From Antechinus flavipes (Eukaryota), in assembly GCF_016432865.1 (NCBI RefSeq), contig NC_067403.1, positions 257,052,001 to 257,116,000 on the forward strand: a stretch of DNA of 64,000 bases, written 5' to 3'. Both the position numbers and the translations under genes were made by a program. The notes beneath the pieces were generated by a model. The model was not told where the DNA came from and ran no database searches. It was given only the letters and a program-made list of their open reading frames with translations. Of the stretch, positions 39,270 to 50,647 are shown in pieces (positions within the stretch are counted from its first letter, which is position 1; every line of letters begins with the position of its first letter).

Positions 39270-39860
39270 TTAGTGCTAGGAGAGGAGGGAGGAAAGGGGA
39301 GAGAAAAGAAAGGAAGGAAGAACGGAGGGAGGCGGGGAGGGGAAGGGAAGAAGTAAATGGAAAGGAAGGAAGGAAAGAAGGAGGAAGGAAAAAAGGGAGA
39401 GAGGAAGGGGAGAANNNNNNNNNNNNNNNNNNNNNNNNNNNNNNNNNNNNNNNNNNNNNNNNNNNNNNNNNNNNNNNNNNNNNNNNNNNNNNNNNNNNNN
39501 NNNNNNNNNNNNNNNNNNNNNNNNNNNNNNNNNNNNNNNNNNNNNNNNNNNNNNNNNNNNNNNNNNNNNNNNNNGAGAGAGGGAAAAGGAAGGAAATTAA
39601 GGAAAGANNNNNNNNNNNNNNNNNNNNNNNNNNNNNNNNNNNNNNNNNNNNNNNNNNNNNNNNNNNNNNNNNNNNNNNNNNNNNNNNNNNNNNNNNNNNN
39701 NNNNNNNNNNNNNNNNNNNNNNNNNNNNNNNNNNNNNNNNNNNNNNGAGAGAGAGGGAAAAGGAAGGAAATAGATGGAAATTAAGGAAAGGGAAGGAAGA
39801 AACACAAGGAGGAAAGGAAGGGAAGAAGGAGGAAGAAAGGAGGGAGAGGAAAGAAAGGGC
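39270..39860. repeat. Polypurine tract with two N gaps or masks (39415-39574, 39608-39746)
   Basis: Direct reading. Confidence 0.9.
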
Positions 39861-40427
39861 AGAAACCAGCATTTATTGTGTACTCTGGGCCAGTCACTGT
39901 GCTAACACAATATTAGCTCCTTTATCTGCTCAACAACCTTGGGAAGCAGATGCTGTGATTGTTCCCATTTTGCAGCGGAGGACACTGAGGCAGACAGCAG
40001 TTAAGTCATTTGCCTGGGATCACACAGCTAATAAGGGGCTGAATTTGAACTTAGGGCAAGCCGTCTATACAGGACACCTCTGGCGGAACGACTAGGACTG
40101 CCCTTGGGATCAAGAGGGCTGGGTTGGGATCTCAGCTCTGGTCCTTCCTGGTTGTGGGACGTGGACAAGTCGGAAGTTCTCTGAGCCTCAGTGTTCTCAT
40201 CTGTGAAATGGGGAGAGGGCAGCTGGGGGCGAGGGGGAGGGGCGGTGGTGGTCAGGGCTCCCTTTGACCTGGAGCTCGCTGTGGTTTGCACTTTGGAGCT
40301 TCAGCCGCTCCAACCTTTGGTCCCTCGTCACCTGGCGGCTGGGTGTGGACTCCCCCGGCCGAGCAGCGGCAGCTCCGGGTACTTAGGAGAGAGCCGGGCC
40401 CCGGGCTGGTCATTCCCCGCCGCGGCC

Positions 40428-40742
40428 ATGGTGACCACTCGGAGCCAGTCCCTCAGGCTCCCCCGGGCCTCCTATAACAAACTCCAGGACGCGTGGGGGG
40501 ATCGCTCAGAACGCAAGGGGCTGAGCCCCCTCGTCCCCCAGGGCCGCCAGCAGGGCCCCCGCTTCCAGAGGTCCCTCAGCCTCCGGCCCCGGAGAGAAAA
40601 GCGGCCGCCGGAAGCCAGCGGGGGCCTCCCCGAGGGCGGGGACTCCCCTCCTCCCGACGGCGCTGCCGGGAACCCCGGGGACACGGAGCAGCTGATCCAA
40701 GGCAAGGCTCGGGGGAGGCAGCGAATGCACCAGTATAAGAAG
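40428..40742 (+). CDS. Coding exon 1 (105 codons) of a predicted two-exon gene, C1orf115/RDD1 (DUF4710)-like
   Basis: Strong Kozak GCCGCGGCCATGG, open frame MVTTRSQSLRLPRASYNKLQD...RGRQRMHQYKK, perfect phase-0 donor AAG|GTAAGT, inside a CpG island. Confidence 0.7.
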
Positions 40743-41516
40743 GTAAGTGATGGGGGCTGGGAGGAGGGAGGCTGGGAAGGGCCCCGGCCGCCCTCCTGAG
40801 CCAGGCCCTAAGACAGAGACCCAGAGCTGGGCCGTGTCTGGTCCCGAGCCAGATCTGGCCACGGCCCCATGAGTCTGGAGGGGAAAGTGAGGCGGGCGAC
40901 CTTGCCCAGCCCTCCCTCATTTAACTCCACTTCACTTGCCTGATCTCTGACATCAGGGCCCTCCCAGAATGAAGGATAAACAAAGTTTCCGTCCGTAAAA
41001 TGGGAACGATAAGGCTTCGAGGGTCTCCTTCCCTGGGCTGCCCCCCAGAATCCCTCAGCGCTCTGGACGAAGCTTCCCATAAGCCGAGCAAGCGTCCTCC
41101 CATTTCACAGCTGAATACACTGAGGCTAGGCGACGGGGCAGACCCCAGAGAATTCCGTCTGTGAATGGGATCCCTGTGGCTGTCGTTCTGGTTTGGGGGG
41201 AGCGCTGCCTGATTCCTCATCGGGGGCCCTCACGGCTTCATTCCCAGCGCTTGCGGGGGCTTTCCCTGAGGACCTCCTTCCCCGGAGCATCCTGGGACTC
41301 TGGAGGGGGCGTCCTGGAGACCCAGAGTGGCCGGGCGGCCAGCAGCACAGCCGGCGTCCCCAGGGCCCGGGGCTGGAAGGGGGAAGGGGCGACGGAGCTA
41401 GCTGACATCCCCGGCCGAGCTGGGACGGGAGGCGGGGCAAGGGCTGCTAGGGCTCAGCCGTCCCCCCGGGACACAATTCCTCCCCACTGACCGTCTTCTG
41501 CCTCTCTGGCCCCCAG

Positions 41517-41627
41517 CAGGTGGATCATGCCCTGAGAAGAACGTGGGGGAGCTTCGTGGCCAACCTCCCGGGGGTGACCCTCAGCCGCTCGGCCCCGCCC
41601 GGCCCCGCCCAGGACTCTGCCAGCTGA
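41517..41627 (+). CDS. Coding exon 2 of the same gene: (Q)VDHALRRTWGSFVANLPGVTLSRSAPPGPAQDSAS*
   Basis: Branch point CACTGAC (~41485-41491), pyrimidine tract, tandem CAG CAG acceptor. Both acceptors are in frame with exon 1. TGA at 41625-41627. Confidence 0.7.
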   Translation, partial: QVDHALRRTWGSFVANLPGVTLSRSAPPGPAQDSAS

Positions 41628-42650
41628 AGGGGGGCGGCGGTGGGCAGGACCCCCTGTCCCAGCTTCCTCCGGGCCCGGGATGACCAGAACTTCCAGGGAG
41701 TCCCCAGGCTCCTCCGGGCGGACGCCGGCGCCGCTCTGCTCCTTTATTTATAATTTACAGCCTCGTCCCTTCCTCGGCCAAGCGGCGTCTCCTCGGGTGC
41801 CTTGCCCGGCCCCGCGGCCCGGGCGCCCCCTCCGTCCTCGCGGCCCGGGCACCCCCTTGGTGCTCCTGGCCGGCCGCTGACTTCCTTCTGGAGGCCGAAG
41901 CCATTGATCTTTCTGGGGCTCTGCCCCAGAAGGGGAGGCCGGCCCTTAGCCTCAGCAGCCTCCCTGGGGTGAAGGGAGATATTCAGGGGCCTGGAGAGCG
42001 AGGGCTGCTGACGCCGGACTCCTGCTGAAGCCCTCTCTGACCCCTGACCCCCTGCCGGGACCTCGCTGCCCCCCGAGAACAGACCCCCCCCTTCTCCCTC
42101 GGGTGGGCTCCTGGGCCCGGGATGCTCTTCCTCCTCATCTCGGCTTCCTGTAGCGGGGCTGACATCCCGCCTCCCCAGGAAGCCTCTCCCGGCCCCCTCA
42201 GCCCCAGGCCCTTCCCCGGAGCGACTGCCTCCGATTGACCGATGCCGGGCTCCTTCGCAGGGGACTGTGGACAGGGGGTCTCCCTATTCGATTGTAGCCT
42301 CTCGGAAGAGCTTTTGCTTGGCCAGTGCCCGGCACACAGCAGGCACTTAATAAATGCTCACGGAGCCACGGATTGGCCGAAAACCTGCCCTCCAATACCT
42401 CCCTCTTCTTCCCGGCCTGAGCAAGGATGCTGCCCTAGGGAAGGGCCCACCCTGGGCCTTTGGCCGCGGTCCCTTCCCTTCCAAGGGGCCTGGGCGGGGG
42501 CTGGCTGCACCAGGAGGGGCCAGAGAGGCAGAGGGGGCCCGGCTGTGCCGGGGAGTGCCCGCTGCTCTGTGACCTGCCCCTCCCCGCCCGACCGGCCGCA
42601 CACTGACAGGGCCGGGGCCGGGACCGGACACAAGTCACCATCTGCTGATG

Positions 42651-42656
42651 AATAAA
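42651..42656 (+). terminator. Candidate poly(A) signal of the two-exon gene
   Basis: AATAAA followed about 20 nt later by GU-rich GTGTCTCGTT. AU-rich TTTTATTTATAATTTA in the putative 3' UTR near 41745. A second AATAAA near 42349 lies in an L2/MIR-type tail. Confidence 0.5.
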
Positions 42657-43096: not shown

Positions 43097-46000
43097 GTGA
43101 CCTGGACAAATAATCATTTCGGGCTGGGGGGGACTTTGCTATTGACCTTGACAAATACTTGTTTTGGACTGGGGGGATTTTGTTAGTGACCTTGAAAAAC
43201 AACTGTTTGGGGCTGGGGGGGAACGACTTTGTTAGTGACCTTGACAAATAAACATTTTGGACTGGGGGGGACTTTGTTATTGACCTTGACAAACAACTGT
43301 TTTGGGCTGGGAGGACTTTATTAGTGACCTTGACAAATACTTATTTTGAACTGGGGGGACATTGTTAGTGACCTTGACAAATAACATTTTGGACTGGGGG
43401 GACTTTGTTATCGACCTTGACAAACAACTGTTTTGGGCTGGGGGTGACTTTGCTAGTGACCTTGATAAATAACTGTTTTGGATTGGAGATGATTTTGCTA
43501 TTGACCTTGAAAAACAACTGTTTGGGGCTAGGGGGACTTTATTAGTGACCTTGAAAAATACTTATTTTGAAGTGGGGGGACATTGTTAGTGATCTTCACA
43601 AATAAACATTTTGGGCTGGGAGGGACTTTGTTAGTGACCTTGACAAATAACTGTTTGGGGCTGGGAGGGGATGACTTTGTTAGTGACCTTGACAAATAAC
43701 ATTTTGGACTGGGGGGGACTTTGTTATTGACCTTGACAAACAACTGTTTTGGGCTGGGGGTGACTTTGCTAGTGACCTTGATAAATAACTGTTTTGGATT
43801 GGAGATGATTTTGCTATTGACCTTGAAAAACAACTGTTTGGGGCTAGGGGGACTTTATTAGTGACCTTGACAAATACTTATTTTGAACTGGGGGGACATT
43901 GTTAGTGACCTTGACAAATAAACATTTTGGGCTGGGAGGGACTTTGTTAGTGACCTTGAAAAACAACTGTTTGGGGCTGGGAGGGGATGACTTTGTTAGT
44001 GACCTTGACAAATAACATTTTGGACTGGGGGGAGTTTGTTATTGACCTTGACAAACAACTGTTTTGGGCTGGGGGGTGACTTTGCTAGTGACCTTGATAA
44101 ATAACTGTTTTGGATTGGAGATGATTTTGCTATTGACCTTGAAAAACAACTGGGGCTAGGGGGACTTTATTAGTGACCTTGACAAATACTTATTTTGAAC
44201 TGGGGGGACATTGTTAGTGACCTTGACAAATAAACATTTTGGGCTGGGAGGGACTTTGTTAGTGACCTTGACAAATAACTATTTTGGGCTGGGGGGAGGG
44301 GACTTTGTTAGTGACCTTGACAAACAACTGTTTTGGGCTGGGGGGAACTTTGTTAGTGACCTTGAAAAACAACTGTTTGGGGCTGGGAGGGGATGACTTT
44401 GTTAGTGACCTTGACAAATAACATTTTGGACTGGGGGGGACTTTGTTATTGACCTTGACAAACAACTGTTTTGGGCTGGGGGTGACTTTGCTAGTGACCT
44501 TGATAAACAACTGTTTTGGATTGGAGATGATTTTGCTATTGACCTTGAAAAACAACTGTTTGGGGCTAGGGGGACTTTATTAGTGACCTTGACAAATACT
44601 TATTTTGAAGTGGGGGGACATTGTTAGTGACCTTGACAAATAAACATTTTGGGCTGGGAGGGACTTTGTTAGTGACCTTGACAAATAACTATTTTGGGCT
44701 GGGGGGAGGGGACTTTGTTAGTGACCTTGACAAACAACTGTTTTGGGCTGGGGGGAACTTTGTTAGTGACCTTGAAAAACAACTGTTTGGGGCTGGGAGG
44801 GGATGACTTTGTTAGTGACCTTGACAAATAACATTTTGGACTGGGGGGACTTTGTTAGTGACCTTGACAAACAACTGTTTTGGGCTGGGGGGACTTTATT
44901 AGTGACCTTGACAAACAACTGTTTTGGGCTGGGGGGAGGGGACTTTGTTAGTGACCTTGACAAACAACTGTTTTGGGCTGGGGGGAGGGGACTTTGTTAG
45001 TGACCTTGACAAACAACTGTTTTGGGCTGGGAGGGACTTTGTTAGTGACCTTGACAAATAACTATTTTGGGCTGGGGGGAGGGACTTTGTTAGTGACCTT
45101 GACAAACAACTGTTTTGGGCTGGGGGGAACTTTGTTAGTGACCTTGAAAAACAACTGTTTGGGGCTGGGAGGGGATGACTTTGTTAGTGACCTTGACAAA
45201 TAACATTTTGGACTGGGGGGACTTTGTTAGTGACCTTGACAAACAACTGTTTTGGGCTGGGGGGAGGGACTTTGTTAGTGACCTTGACAAACAACTGTTT
45301 TGGGCTGGGGGGAGGGGACTTTGTTAGTGACCCTGACAAACAACTGTTTTGGGCTGGGGGGAGGGGACTTTGTTAGTGACCTTGACAAACAACTGTTTTG
45401 GGCTGGGGGGAGGGACTTTGTTAGTGACCTTGACAAACAACTGTTTTGGGCTGGGAGGGACTTTGTTAGTGACCTTGACAAATAACTATTTTGGGCTGGG
45501 GGGAGGGGACTTTGTTAGTGACCTTGACAAACAACTGTTTTGGGTTGGGGAAACTTTGTTAGTGACCTTGAAAAACAACTGTTTGGGGCTGGGAGGGGAT
45601 GACTTTGTTAGTGACCTTGACAATAACATTTTGGACTGGGGGGACTTTGTTATTGACCTTGACAAACAACTGTTTTGGGCTGGGGGGGTGACTTTGCTAG
45701 TGACCTTGATAAATAACTGTTTTGGATTGGAGATGATTTTGCTATTGACCTTGAAAAACAACTGTTTGGGGCTAGGGGGACTTTATTAGTGACCTTGACA
45801 AATACTTATTTTGAAGTGGGGGGACATTGTTAGTGATCTTGACAAATAAACATTTTGGGCTGGGAGGGACTTTGTTAGTGACCTTGACAAATAACTGTTT
45901 GGGGCTGGGAGGGGATGACTTTGTTAGTGACCTTGACAAATAACATTTTGGACTGGGGGGACTTTGTTATTGACCTTGACAAACAACTGTTTTGGGCTGG

Positions 46001-49000
46001 GGGATGACTTTGCTAGTGACCTTGATAAATAACTGTTTTGGATTGGAGATGATTTTGCTATTGACCTTGAAAAACAACTGTTTGGGGCTAGGGGGACTTT
46101 ATTAGTGACCTTGACAAATACTTATTTTGAAGTGGGGGGACATTATTAGTGATCTTGACAAATAAACATTTTGGGCTGGGAGGGACTTTGTTAGTGACCT
46201 TGACAAATAACTGTTTGGGGCTGGGAGGGGATGACTTTGTTAGTGACCTTGACAAATAACATTTTGGACTGGGGGGACTTTGTTATTGACCTTGACAAAC
46301 AACTGTTTTGGGCTGGGGGATGACTTTGCTAGTGACCTTGATAAATAACTGTTTTGGATTGGAGATGATTTTGCTATTGACCTTGAAAAACAACTGTTTG
46401 GGGCTAGGGGGACTTTATTAGTGACCTTGACAAATACTTATTTTGAAGTGGGGGGACATTGTTAGTGACCTTGACAAATAAACATTTTGGGCTGGGAGGG
46501 ACTTTGTTAGTGACCTTGAAAAACAACTGTTTGGGGCTGGGAGAGGATGACTTTGTTAGTGACCTTGACAAATAACATTTTGGACTGGGGGGGACTTTGT
46601 TAGTGACCTTGAAAAACAACTGTTTGGGGCTGGGAGGGGATGACTTTGTTAGTGACCTTGACAAATAACATTTTGGACTGGGGGGACTTTGTTAGTGACC
46701 TTGACAAACAACTGTTTTGGGCTGGGGGGAGGGGACTTTGTTAGTGACCTTGACAAACAACTGTTTTGGGCTAGGGGGACTTTATTAGTGACCTTGACAA
46801 ATAGTTATTTTGGACAGGGGGGACTTTGTTAGTGACCTTGAAAAACAACCGTTTTGGGCTGGGGGTTGGGGAGACTTTGTTATTGACCTTGACAAATAAA
46901 CATTTTGGGCTGGTGGAGACTTTGTTATTGACCTTGACAAATAAACATTTTGGGCTGGGGGGATGACTTTGTTAGTGACCTTGAAAAATAACTGTTTGGG
47001 GCTAGAGGACTTTATTAGTGACCTTGACAAATACTTATTTTGGACTGGGGGGACTTTGTTAGTGACCTTGACAAATAAACATTTTGGGCTGGGGGGATGA
47101 CTTTGTTAGTGACCTTGACAAACATTTTGGACTGGGGGGACTTTGTTAGTGACCTTGACAAATACTTATTTTGGACTGGGGGACTTTGTTAGTGACCTTG
47201 AAAAACAACCGTTTTGGGCTGGGGGTTGGGGAGACTTTGTTATTGACCTTGACAAATAAACATTTTGGGCTGGTGGAGACTTTGTTATTGACCTTGACAA
47301 ATAAACATTTTGGGCTGGGGGGATGACTTTGTTAGTGACCTTGACAAACATTTTGGACCGGGGGGACTTTGTTAGTGACCTTGACAAATACTTATTTTGG
47401 ACTGGGAGGACTTTGTTAGTGACCTTGACAAATAAACATTTTGGACTGGGGGGAGGGGATTTTGTTAGTGACCTTGACAAACAACGGTTTTGGATTGAAG
47501 ATGACTTTGCCATTGACCTTGACAAACAACTGTTTCGGGCTGGGGGAACTTTGTTAGTGACTTTGACAAATACTTATTTTGGACTGGGGGGACTTTGTTA
47601 GTGACCTTGACAAATAAACATTTTGGGCTGGGGGGATGACTTTGTTAGTGACCTTGACAAACAACTGTTTTGGGCTGGGGGTGACTTTGCTATTGACCTT
47701 GACAAACAACTGTTTTGGGCTGGGGGGGACTTTGTTAGTGACCTTGACAAACAACTGTTTGGGGCTGGGAGAGGATGACTTTGTTAGTGACCTTGACAAA
47801 TAAACATTTTGGACTGGGGGGACTTTGTTAGTGACCTTGACAAATACTTATTTTGGACTAGGAGGACTTTGTTAGTGACCTTGACAAATAAACATTTTGG
47901 ACTGGGGGGACTTTGTTAGTGACCTTGACAAATACTTATTTTGGACTAGGAGGACTTTGTTAGTGACCTTGACAAATAAACATTTTGGACTGGGGGGATG
48001 ACTTTGTTAGTGACCTTGACAAACATTTTGGACGGGGGGACTTTGTTATTGACCTTGACAAATACTTATTTTGGACTGGGAGGACTTTGTTAGTGACCTT
48101 GACAAATACTTATTTTGAACTAGGAGGACTTTGTTAGTGACCTTGACAAATACTTATTTTGGACTGGGGTGGGGACTTTGTTAGTGACCTTGACAAATAA
48201 CATTTTGGACTGGGGGGGGGACTTTGTTAGTGACCTTGACAAATAAACATTTTGGGTTGGGGGGGACTTTGTTAGTGACCTTGACAAATACTTATTTTGG
48301 ACTAGGAGGTCTTTGTTAGTAACCTTGACAAATAAACATTTTGGACTGGGGGGATGACTTTGTTAGTGACCTTGACAAACATTTTGGACCGGGGGGACTT
48401 TGTTATTGACCTTGACAAATACTTATTTTGGACTGGGAGGACTTTGTTAGTGACCTTGACAAATACTTATTTTGAACTAGGAGGACTTTGTTAGTGACCT
48501 TGACAAATACTTATTTTGGACTGGGGTGGGGACTTTGTTAGTGACCTTGACAAATAACATTTTGGACTGGGGGGGGACTTTGTTAGTGACCTTGACAAAT
48601 AAACATTTTGGGTTGGGGGGGACTTTGTTAGTGACCTTGACAAATACTTATTTTGGACTAGGAGGTCTTTGTTAGTGACCTTGACAAATAAACATTTTGG
48701 GCTGGGGGGATGACTTTGTTAGTGACCTTGAAAAATAACTGTTTGGGGCTAGAGGACTTTATTAGTGACCTTGACAAATACTTATTTTGGACTGGGGGGA
48801 CTTGTTAGTGACCTTGACAAATAAACATTTTGGGCTGGGGGGATGACTTTGTTAGTGACCTTGACAAACATTTTGGACTGGGGGGACTTTGTTAGTGACC
48901 TTGACAAATACTTATTTTGGACTGGGGGATTTTGTTAGTGACCTTGAAAAACAACCGTTTTGGGCTGGGGGTTGGGGAGACTTTGTTATTGACCTTGACA

Positions 49001-50647
49001 AATAAACATTTTGGGCTGGTGGAGACTTTGTTATTGACCTTGACAAATAAACATTTTGGGCTGGGGGGATGACTTTGTTAGTGACCTTGACAAACATTTT
49101 GGACTGGGGGGACTTTGTTAGTGACCTTGACAAATACTTATTTTGGACTGGGGGATTTTGTTAGTGACCTTGAAAAACAACCGTTTTGGGCTGGGGGTTG
49201 GGGAGACTTTGTTATTGACCTTGACAAATAAACATTTTGGGCTGGTGGAGACTTTGTTATTGACCTTGACAAATAAACATTTTGGGCTGGGGGGATGACT
49301 TTGTTAGTGACCTTGACAAACATTTTGGACCGGGGGGACTTTGTTAGTGACCTTGACAAATACTTATTTTGGACTGGGAGGACTTTGTTAGTGACCTTGA
49401 CAAATAAACATTTTGGACTGGGGGGAGGGGATTTTGTTAGTGACCTTGACAAACAACGGTTTTGGATTGAAGATGACTTTGCCATTGACCTTGACAAACA
49501 ACTGTTTCGGGCTGGGGGAACTTTGTTAGTGACTTTGGCAAATACTTATTTTGGACTGGGGGGACTTTGTTAGTGACCTTGACAAATAAACATTTTGGGC
49601 TGGGGGGATGACTTTGTTAGTGACCTTGACAAACAACTGTTTTGGGCTGGGGGTGACTTTGCTATTGACCTTGACAAACAACTGTTTTGGGCTGGGGGGG
49701 ACTTTGTTAGTGACCTTGACAAACAACTGTTTGGGGCTGGGAGAGGATGACTTTGTTAGGGACCTTGACAAATAAACATTTTTTACTGGGGGGATTTTAT
49801 TAGTGACCTTGACAAATAAACATTTTGGACTGGGGGGAGGGGATTTTGTTAGTTACCTTGACAAATAACTGTTTTGGATTGGAGATGACTTTGCTATTGA
49901 CCTTGACAAACAACTGTTTTGGGCTGGGGGGGGACAACTTTGTTAGTGACCTTGACAAATAAACATTTTGGACTGGGGGGGATGACTTTGTTAGTGACCT
50001 GACAAACAACTGTTTTGGGCTAGGGGGACTTTATTAGTGACCTTGACAAATACTTATTTTGGACTGGGGGGAAATGACTTTGTTAGTGACCTTGACAAAT
50101 ACTTATTTTGGACTGGGGGGACTTTGTTAGTGACCTTGACAAATAAACATTTTGGGCTCGGGGGGGGGGGGGATGACTTTGTTAGTGACCTGACAAACAA
50201 CTGTTTTGGGCTGGGGGGGACTTTGTTAGTGACCTTGACAAACAACTGTTTTGGGCTGGGGGGAACTTTGTTAGTGACCTTGACAAATAACTGTTTGGGG
50301 CTGGGAGGGGATGACTTTGTTAGTGACTTTGACAAATAAACATTTTGGACTGGGGGGACTTTGTTAGTGACCTTGACAAATAACTGTTTTGGACTGGGGG
50401 GAACTTTGTTAGTAACCTTGACAAATAAACATTTTGGGCTGGGGGGATGACTTTGTTAGTGACCTTGACAAATAACTGTTTTGGATTGGAGATGACTTTG
50501 CCATTGACCTTGACAAACAACTGTTTTGGGCTGGGGGGAACTTTGTTAGTGACCTTGAAAAACAACTGTTTGGGGTTGGGGGGGGACGATTTTGTTAGTG
50601 ACCTTGACAAATAAACATTTTGGGCTGGGGTGGGGACTTTGTTAGTG
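43097..50647. repeat. 7.55-kb tandem array of ~43-46-bp monomers (roughly 170 copies) with higher-order repeats
   Basis: Consensus GACTTTGTTAGTGACCTTGA-(C/A)AAA(C/T)NNNN(G/A)TTT-TGG(G/A)CTGGGGG. The marker GATTGGAGATG recurs every 316 bp (43481, 43797, 44113; 45725, 46041, 46357). A segment is duplicated at 1972-bp offset (identical or near-identical ORFs at 47166/49138, 47323/49295, 47554/49526). Confidence 0.97.

Follow-up and report, generated by a model that had tools for sequence, protein, structure and literature searches.

The stretch between positions 40428 and 41627 of the window, i.e., the whole 64-kb segment of Antechinus flavipes DNA that was analysed, very probably holds the antechinus ortholog of FACI/C11orf86, a known gene of two coding exons that is annotated by NCBI. 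When the segments 40428-40742 and 41517-41627 are joined at their GT...AG borders, they reproduce exactly, in a script comparison, a 141-aa NCBI protein (P0001) that is named 'uncharacterized protein C11orf86 homolog [Antechinus flavipes]' and has entries in NCBI, UniRef, and nr. This letter-for-letter agreement is far beyond chance, and it bears out the two-exon spliced gene that was proposed in the initial annotation. The same annotation had described the gene as unrecognised, which is incorrect, given that the exact protein was already listed by NCBI as a C11orf86 homolog. A word search with exon 1 returned P0001, at 100% identity, together with 11 other marsupial entries, 10 of which are named C11orf86 homologs. 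As it is identical to the exon pair, P0001 was used as the query in the whole-length protein analyses.

The antechinus gene is thus already known, through its RefSeq model and through the earlier study of its eutherian orthologs in knockout mice and cells, and it carries little weight as a discovery. The useful outcome is a negative one, that is, the "novel marsupial paralog lost in eutherians" can be struck off. No second copy of FACI was found by tblastn within the 64-kb window. One other entry observed in the databases, P0005 (metaclust, 120 aa), is a devil-like FACI protein without 24 residues of the disordered middle, and probably reflects an alternative gene model or an erroneous one.

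The gene and the conserved block upstream of it are organized as follows:

40310-40324, + strand: conserved promoter block CCAACCTTTGGTCCC, about 105-120 bp upstream of the ATG
40428-40742, + strand: FACI coding exon 1, translated as residues 1-105 (105 codons), ending in ...YKK
40743-41516, + strand: FACI intron of 774 nt, phase 0, GTAAGT...CAG
41517-41627, + strand: FACI coding exon 2, translated as residues 106-141 plus the TGA stop
41628-42656, + strand: presumed FACI 3' untranslated region, with candidate AATAAA signals at 42349-42354 and 42651-42656

The start codon at 40428 has a G at both -3 and +4, and no in-frame ATG precedes it in the reading frame, which is open from 40191. The first exon ends at a phase-0 donor, AAG/GTAAGT, with the intron starting at 40743, while the 3' end of the intron presents a branch point of the CTGAC type (41487-41491), the A of which lies 26 nt upstream of the AG, followed by a pyrimidine tract at 41492-41513 (18 pyrimidines in 22 positions). 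The acceptor is a tandem CAG/CAG (41514-41519), so that exon 2 may begin either at 41517, which gives 36 residues and a protein of 141 aa, or at 41520, which gives 35 residues and a protein of 140 aa, dropping Q106. The TGA stop ends at 41627. The signals that had been reported for this gene, i.e., a Kozak ATG, a phase-0 GTAAGT donor, a branch point, a pyrimidine tract, an acceptor, and a stop, are therefore all present where they were placed.

The account of the 3' untranslated region stood only in part. It had been described as AU-rich and as carrying an AATAAA, but the region that follows the stop is approximately 70% G+C, with a single short AT patch at 41744-41758. The AATAAA is indeed present, though the first on the + strand (42349-42354) is found 722 nt past the stop, followed by a second at 42651-42656. 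Both signals are kept in the devil and the dunnart, and the koala has lost the first. A fragment similar to the core of a MIR SINE (GGCACACAGCAGGCACTTAATAAATGC, 42320-42360) was observed to supply this first AATAAA after the stop. Further downstream, a tandem array of 44-45-bp units that forms an array of nuclear-receptor sites (43097-50647) begins about 1.5 kb past the FACI stop.

The protein belongs to the DUF4633 family (FACI/C11orf86), and not to the C1orf115/RDD1 family. The whole protein matches the Pfam profile of DUF4633 (PF15464) at 84 bits (E 1.1e-23), with residues 3-131 covering positions 4-112 of the 113 in the profile, where the gathering score is 27 bits both for this profile and for that of RDD1 (PF15828). 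Exon 1 alone scores 54 bits (E 2.2e-14) over profile positions 4-88, and exon 2 takes up positions 90-112, which indicates that the splice joins the DUF4633 profile seamlessly. A profile built from 11 marsupial proteins recovered 150 proteins at E <= 0.1, and the best 120 of these 150 matches all carry PF15464, most being named C11orf86 and more than 100 being eutherian, including human. In BLASTP comparisons, the eutherian C11orf86 proteins among the matches listed share 35-47% identity over approximately 90% or more of their length. The proposal that the gene was lost in eutherians is thus refuted, over 100 of the matches listed being C11orf86 proteins of eutherians, human included. When residues 84-141 were submitted to the ESM Atlas, the feature search gave the C11orf86 cluster and nothing else, and the structure search yielded generic long helices.

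The family has been characterised in mouse and human as FACI/C11orf86 (PF15464, DUF4633; PMC8938335, PMC10114425, PMC12302249), where the YxxL and DxxxLI motifs were defined (PMC8938335 and PMC10114425), and the pattern R-x-x-S-[LF]-R corresponds to the PKC-alpha sites S9 and S37 of the mouse protein (PMC12302249). All five of the published FACI motifs, A-E, are found in the antechinus protein, in the published order:

40440-40457, + strand: motif A, RSQSLR (residues 5-10), of the R-x-x-S-[LF]-R PKC-alpha site pattern
40473-40484, + strand: motif B, YNKL (residues 16-19), YxxL sorting motif
40569-40586, + strand: motif C, RSLSLR (residues 48-53), of the R-x-x-S-[LF]-R PKC-alpha site pattern
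40680-40697, + strand: motif D, DTEQLI (residues 85-90), DxxxLI motif of AP2 binding
from about 40704 in exon 1, with the exon 2 part at 41517-41582, + strand: motif E, basic amphipathic helix followed by FVANLPGVTL, of PI(4,5)P2 binding

Across the 46 species aligned, the columns without any variation are exactly the residues of these motifs (S8, R10, Y16, L19, R48, S51, D85, E87, L89, R113, and W115), and the hydrophobic tail FVANLPGVTL is conserved. Given the same alignment, AlphaFold2 predicted one long helix over residues 83-120 (pLDDT about 82 for residues 101-120) as well as a single helical turn at YxxL, the remainder being disordered. Residues 93-118 have a net charge of +7, and the hydrophobic moment over residues 95-122 is 0.35-0.49, which fits the model, but a moment of this size was matched by 195 of 2000 shuffles and is not exceptional alone. 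The basic amphipathic C-terminus that had been suggested to bind membranes agrees with what was shown by experiment for the mouse and human orthologs, in which the basic amphipathic C-terminal helix is responsible for membrane binding (PMC8938335).

Both the structure and the coding sequence of the gene are conserved among relatives. The phase-0 intron occupies one position, after YKK, YRK, or YQQ, in the antechinus, the devil, the dunnart, the koala, and the Steller sea lion, and the tandem CAG/CAG acceptor is common to the same five species. As this acceptor is conserved, forms of the protein with and without Q, i.e., one glutamine inside the membrane-binding helix, occur as isoform pairs in many species, and they are annotated in other marsupials. 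Between the antechinus and the koala, the exons are 77-82% identical and the intron 53%. The dN/dS ratio, obtained exon by exon with the Nei-Gojobori method, lies between 0.41 and 0.50 in five of the six species pairs, with a Fisher p of 0.0006 in the antechinus-koala pair, the length differences between the coding exons of the species are all multiples of three, and the relatives compared present no frame-breaking indels. The dN/dS check that had been proposed for the gene therefore points to purifying selection.

The promoter block CCAACCTTTGGTCCC is conserved in the antechinus, the devil, the dunnart, and the koala, with 10 bases remaining invariant when the sea lion is added, and it occurs once in the 64-kb window. 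In human, HNF4-alpha has been reported to activate the FACI promoter (PMC8938335), and, from its sequence, the block is possibly a DR1/HNF4-type nuclear-receptor site read on the opposite strand, the factor being a putative one. Two other elements were observed in the same region. The first is a purine-rich (AAAGGAAGG)n repeat at 39341-39858, 570-1090 bp upstream of the ATG, which spans two masked runs of N (39415-39746). The second, just upstream of the promoter, is a fragment similar to the core of a MIR SINE (CTCAGTGTTCTCATCTGTGAAATGGG, 40165-40215).

In a maximum-likelihood tree, the 12 marsupial proteins fall on one side of a branch with a support of 100/100, and the well-supported groups, which comprise two didelphids and three dasyurids, agree with the species tree. 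With regard to the surroundings of the gene, the 20 largest ORFs of the window outside FACI had no Pfam match, and no other called gene was found within 10 kb of FACI in the devil, the koala, or the sea lion. The human C11orf86 gene lies between PC/LRFN4 and SYT12. No neighbouring coding exon was identified in the window by these scans, whether of these genes or of MARK1 and MTARC, which would be looked for beside C1orf115. Strict orthology is supported by the single-copy status of the gene, the tree, the shared intron and motifs, and the conservation of the promoter block with the sea lion.

A hidden paralogy is one alternative to this reading, in which the marsupial and eutherian DUF4633 genes would be old duplicates that were kept reciprocally, so that the antechinus gene would belong to the FACI family without being a strict C11orf86 ortholog. 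Some features are in keeping with this arrangement, such as the long branch between marsupials and eutherians (about 0.7 changes per column), the identity of 35-47%, and the extra marsupial segments of approximately 15 and 4 residues. However, the searches gave just one gene per marsupial species, the intron position and the tandem acceptor are identical across the marsupials compared and the sea lion, the five motifs are all common to marsupials and eutherians, and the promoter block is conserved with the sea lion. A fast divergence is also what one would expect of a protein that is largely disordered and has a dN/dS of about 0.45. Given this, such reciprocal retention of duplicates is very improbable.

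It is likewise very improbable that the antechinus gene is silent or decaying behind a conserved frame, the annotated model being one that lacks expression. In favour of this, the antechinus-devil dN/dS is 0.67, not significantly below 1, but that comparison has too few changes for a test (10.5 synonymous and 21.5 non-synonymous). The antechinus frame is intact, as are its start, stop, and splice sites, every motif residue is kept, and the promoter block is conserved.

The resemblance to C1orf115, from which the initial annotation derived its divergent paralog, is genuine but weak. The Pfam RDD1 profile (PF15828) matches the whole of P0001 at 20.6 bits (E 5.2e-4), short of the cut-off of 27 bits, and the match aligns residues 93-134 with positions 33-74 of the 77 in the profile, with no gaps, in the same stretch as the earlier alignment with C1orf115. 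An alignment of this region has also been published (PMC11757849). When the exons were scanned separately (Pfam, E <= 10), the RDD1 match was absent and DUF4633 alone was found, given that the RDD1 match spans the exon junction and is seen only on the whole protein. Among the 46 FACI proteins, RDD1 matches were obtained for eight, all of them marsupial proteins with a KKQVD[YH]AL junction, the seven further proteins having E values of 0.002-0.07, while the match was absent from all 34 eutherian proteins and from the four marsupial proteins without Q. As the eutherian FACI proteins have neither the D-[HY]-A-L segment nor the RDD1 match, the match depends on the register of the helix, and not on composition alone.

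These sub-threshold matches, in the antechinus and in the seven further marsupial proteins, are what favours an unrecognised and divergent paralog of C1orf115/RDD1, kept in marsupials and lost in eutherians. This origin is scarcely credible, however, when NCBI, UniRef, and nr already list the protein, the gene is present in eutherians, human included, and DUF4633 reaches 84 bits against the 20.6 of RDD1. The initial annotation was right in that the gene is not the C1orf115 ortholog. The N-terminal 90 residues, which were said not to align with C1orf115, align well with the FACI motifs A to D, and the total length, which is similar to that of C1orf115, is so by coincidence, through the marsupial-specific extra segments.

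As an ortholog of the mouse and human protein, the antechinus product would be a small peripheral membrane adaptor. Its disordered N-terminal part would bear two phospho-motifs of the PKC-alpha type (residues 5-10 and 48-53) and the YxxL sorting motif (16-19), and the predicted C-terminal helix (83-120) would open with the acidic dileucine DxxxLI (85-90), which may bind the AP2 clathrin adaptor. The helix would then run on as a strongly basic amphipathic segment, followed by the hydrophobic tail, and the two together would be expected to bind the PI(4,5)P2 of the plasma membrane. In mouse and human cells, FACI promotes the clathrin-mediated uptake of the LDL receptor and restrains intestinal fat absorption, and its phosphorylation frees it from coated pits. 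The gene characterised in these species is expressed in liver and intestine, and is induced by fasting and CREB-H. By analogy with these findings, we infer a similar expression, tissue pattern, and biochemical function for FACI in the marsupial.

When compared with the FACI of mouse and human, the antechinus protein presents the motifs A to E in the same order, and a disordered N-terminus followed by a long C-terminal helix, which is a predicted one in the antechinus. The gene also shares the organization of FACI/C11orf86, with its two coding exons, the phase-0 intron within motif E, and the tandem CAG/CAG acceptor. A purine (AG) repeat upstream of the promoter is likewise common to the antechinus gene and to the mouse and human genes, given that an AG-repeat region was described in the mouse and human promoters in the FACI paper. 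On the other hand, the antechinus protein is approximately 20 residues longer than the eutherian FACI (141 residues, compared with about 115-124), which includes approximately 15 extra residues between motifs B and C (residues 31-45, 40518-40562) and four extra ones, D-H-A-L, just after the exon junction (108-111, 41523-41534). Both of these marsupial segments, the shorter of which corresponds to about one turn of a helix, are absent from all 34 of the eutherian proteins aligned.

The comparison with RDD1/C1orf115 also reveals a number of similarities, in that both proteins are small, with a disordered N-terminus and sorting motifs of the AP2 type, and both have a basic amphipathic C-terminal helix and bind phosphoinositides in the known representatives of each (PMC11757849). 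The similarity of the C-termini of FACI and C1orf115, and the AP2 and phosphoinositide binding that they share, were reported by Kang, Jin and Cheng 2025 (PMC11757849, Fig. 1H), who described a structural similarity without a claim of common descent, the words paralog, ancestor, and duplication being absent from the paper. We would go tentatively further, as the register-dependent RDD1 match was obtained in eight of the 12 marsupial proteins, all of them in the Q form, compared with none of the 34 eutherian ones. FACI and RDD1/C1orf115 may be true distant paralogs with a homologous membrane-binding helix, plausibly duplicates from the early vertebrate genome doublings, of which the marsupials would keep the ancestral register (D-[HY]-A-L) that the eutherians lost, a possibility to which we assign somewhat less than an even chance. 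The human regions 1q41 and 11q13 hold paired genes, such as MARK1/MARK2, ESRRG/ESRRA, and CAPN2/CAPN1. Among the mammalian FACI proteins examined, the helix register recognised by the RDD1 profile is found only in marsupials, and it could help to decide whether these two lipid-handling adaptors share an ancestry.

There are also differences between the two. The dileucine of RDD1 comes before its YxxL motif, whereas in FACI the dileucine comes after it. RDD1 has a hydrophobic helix downstream of the amphipathic one (PMC11757849), whereas the antechinus FACI has a proline-containing hydrophobic tail in this position, with the predicted helix ending at residue 120, before L122-P123. Finally, the match of the antechinus FACI to the RDD1 profile covers only its C-terminal part. 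In C1orf115, the N-terminal part carries the motifs C1 to C3 (PMC11757849).
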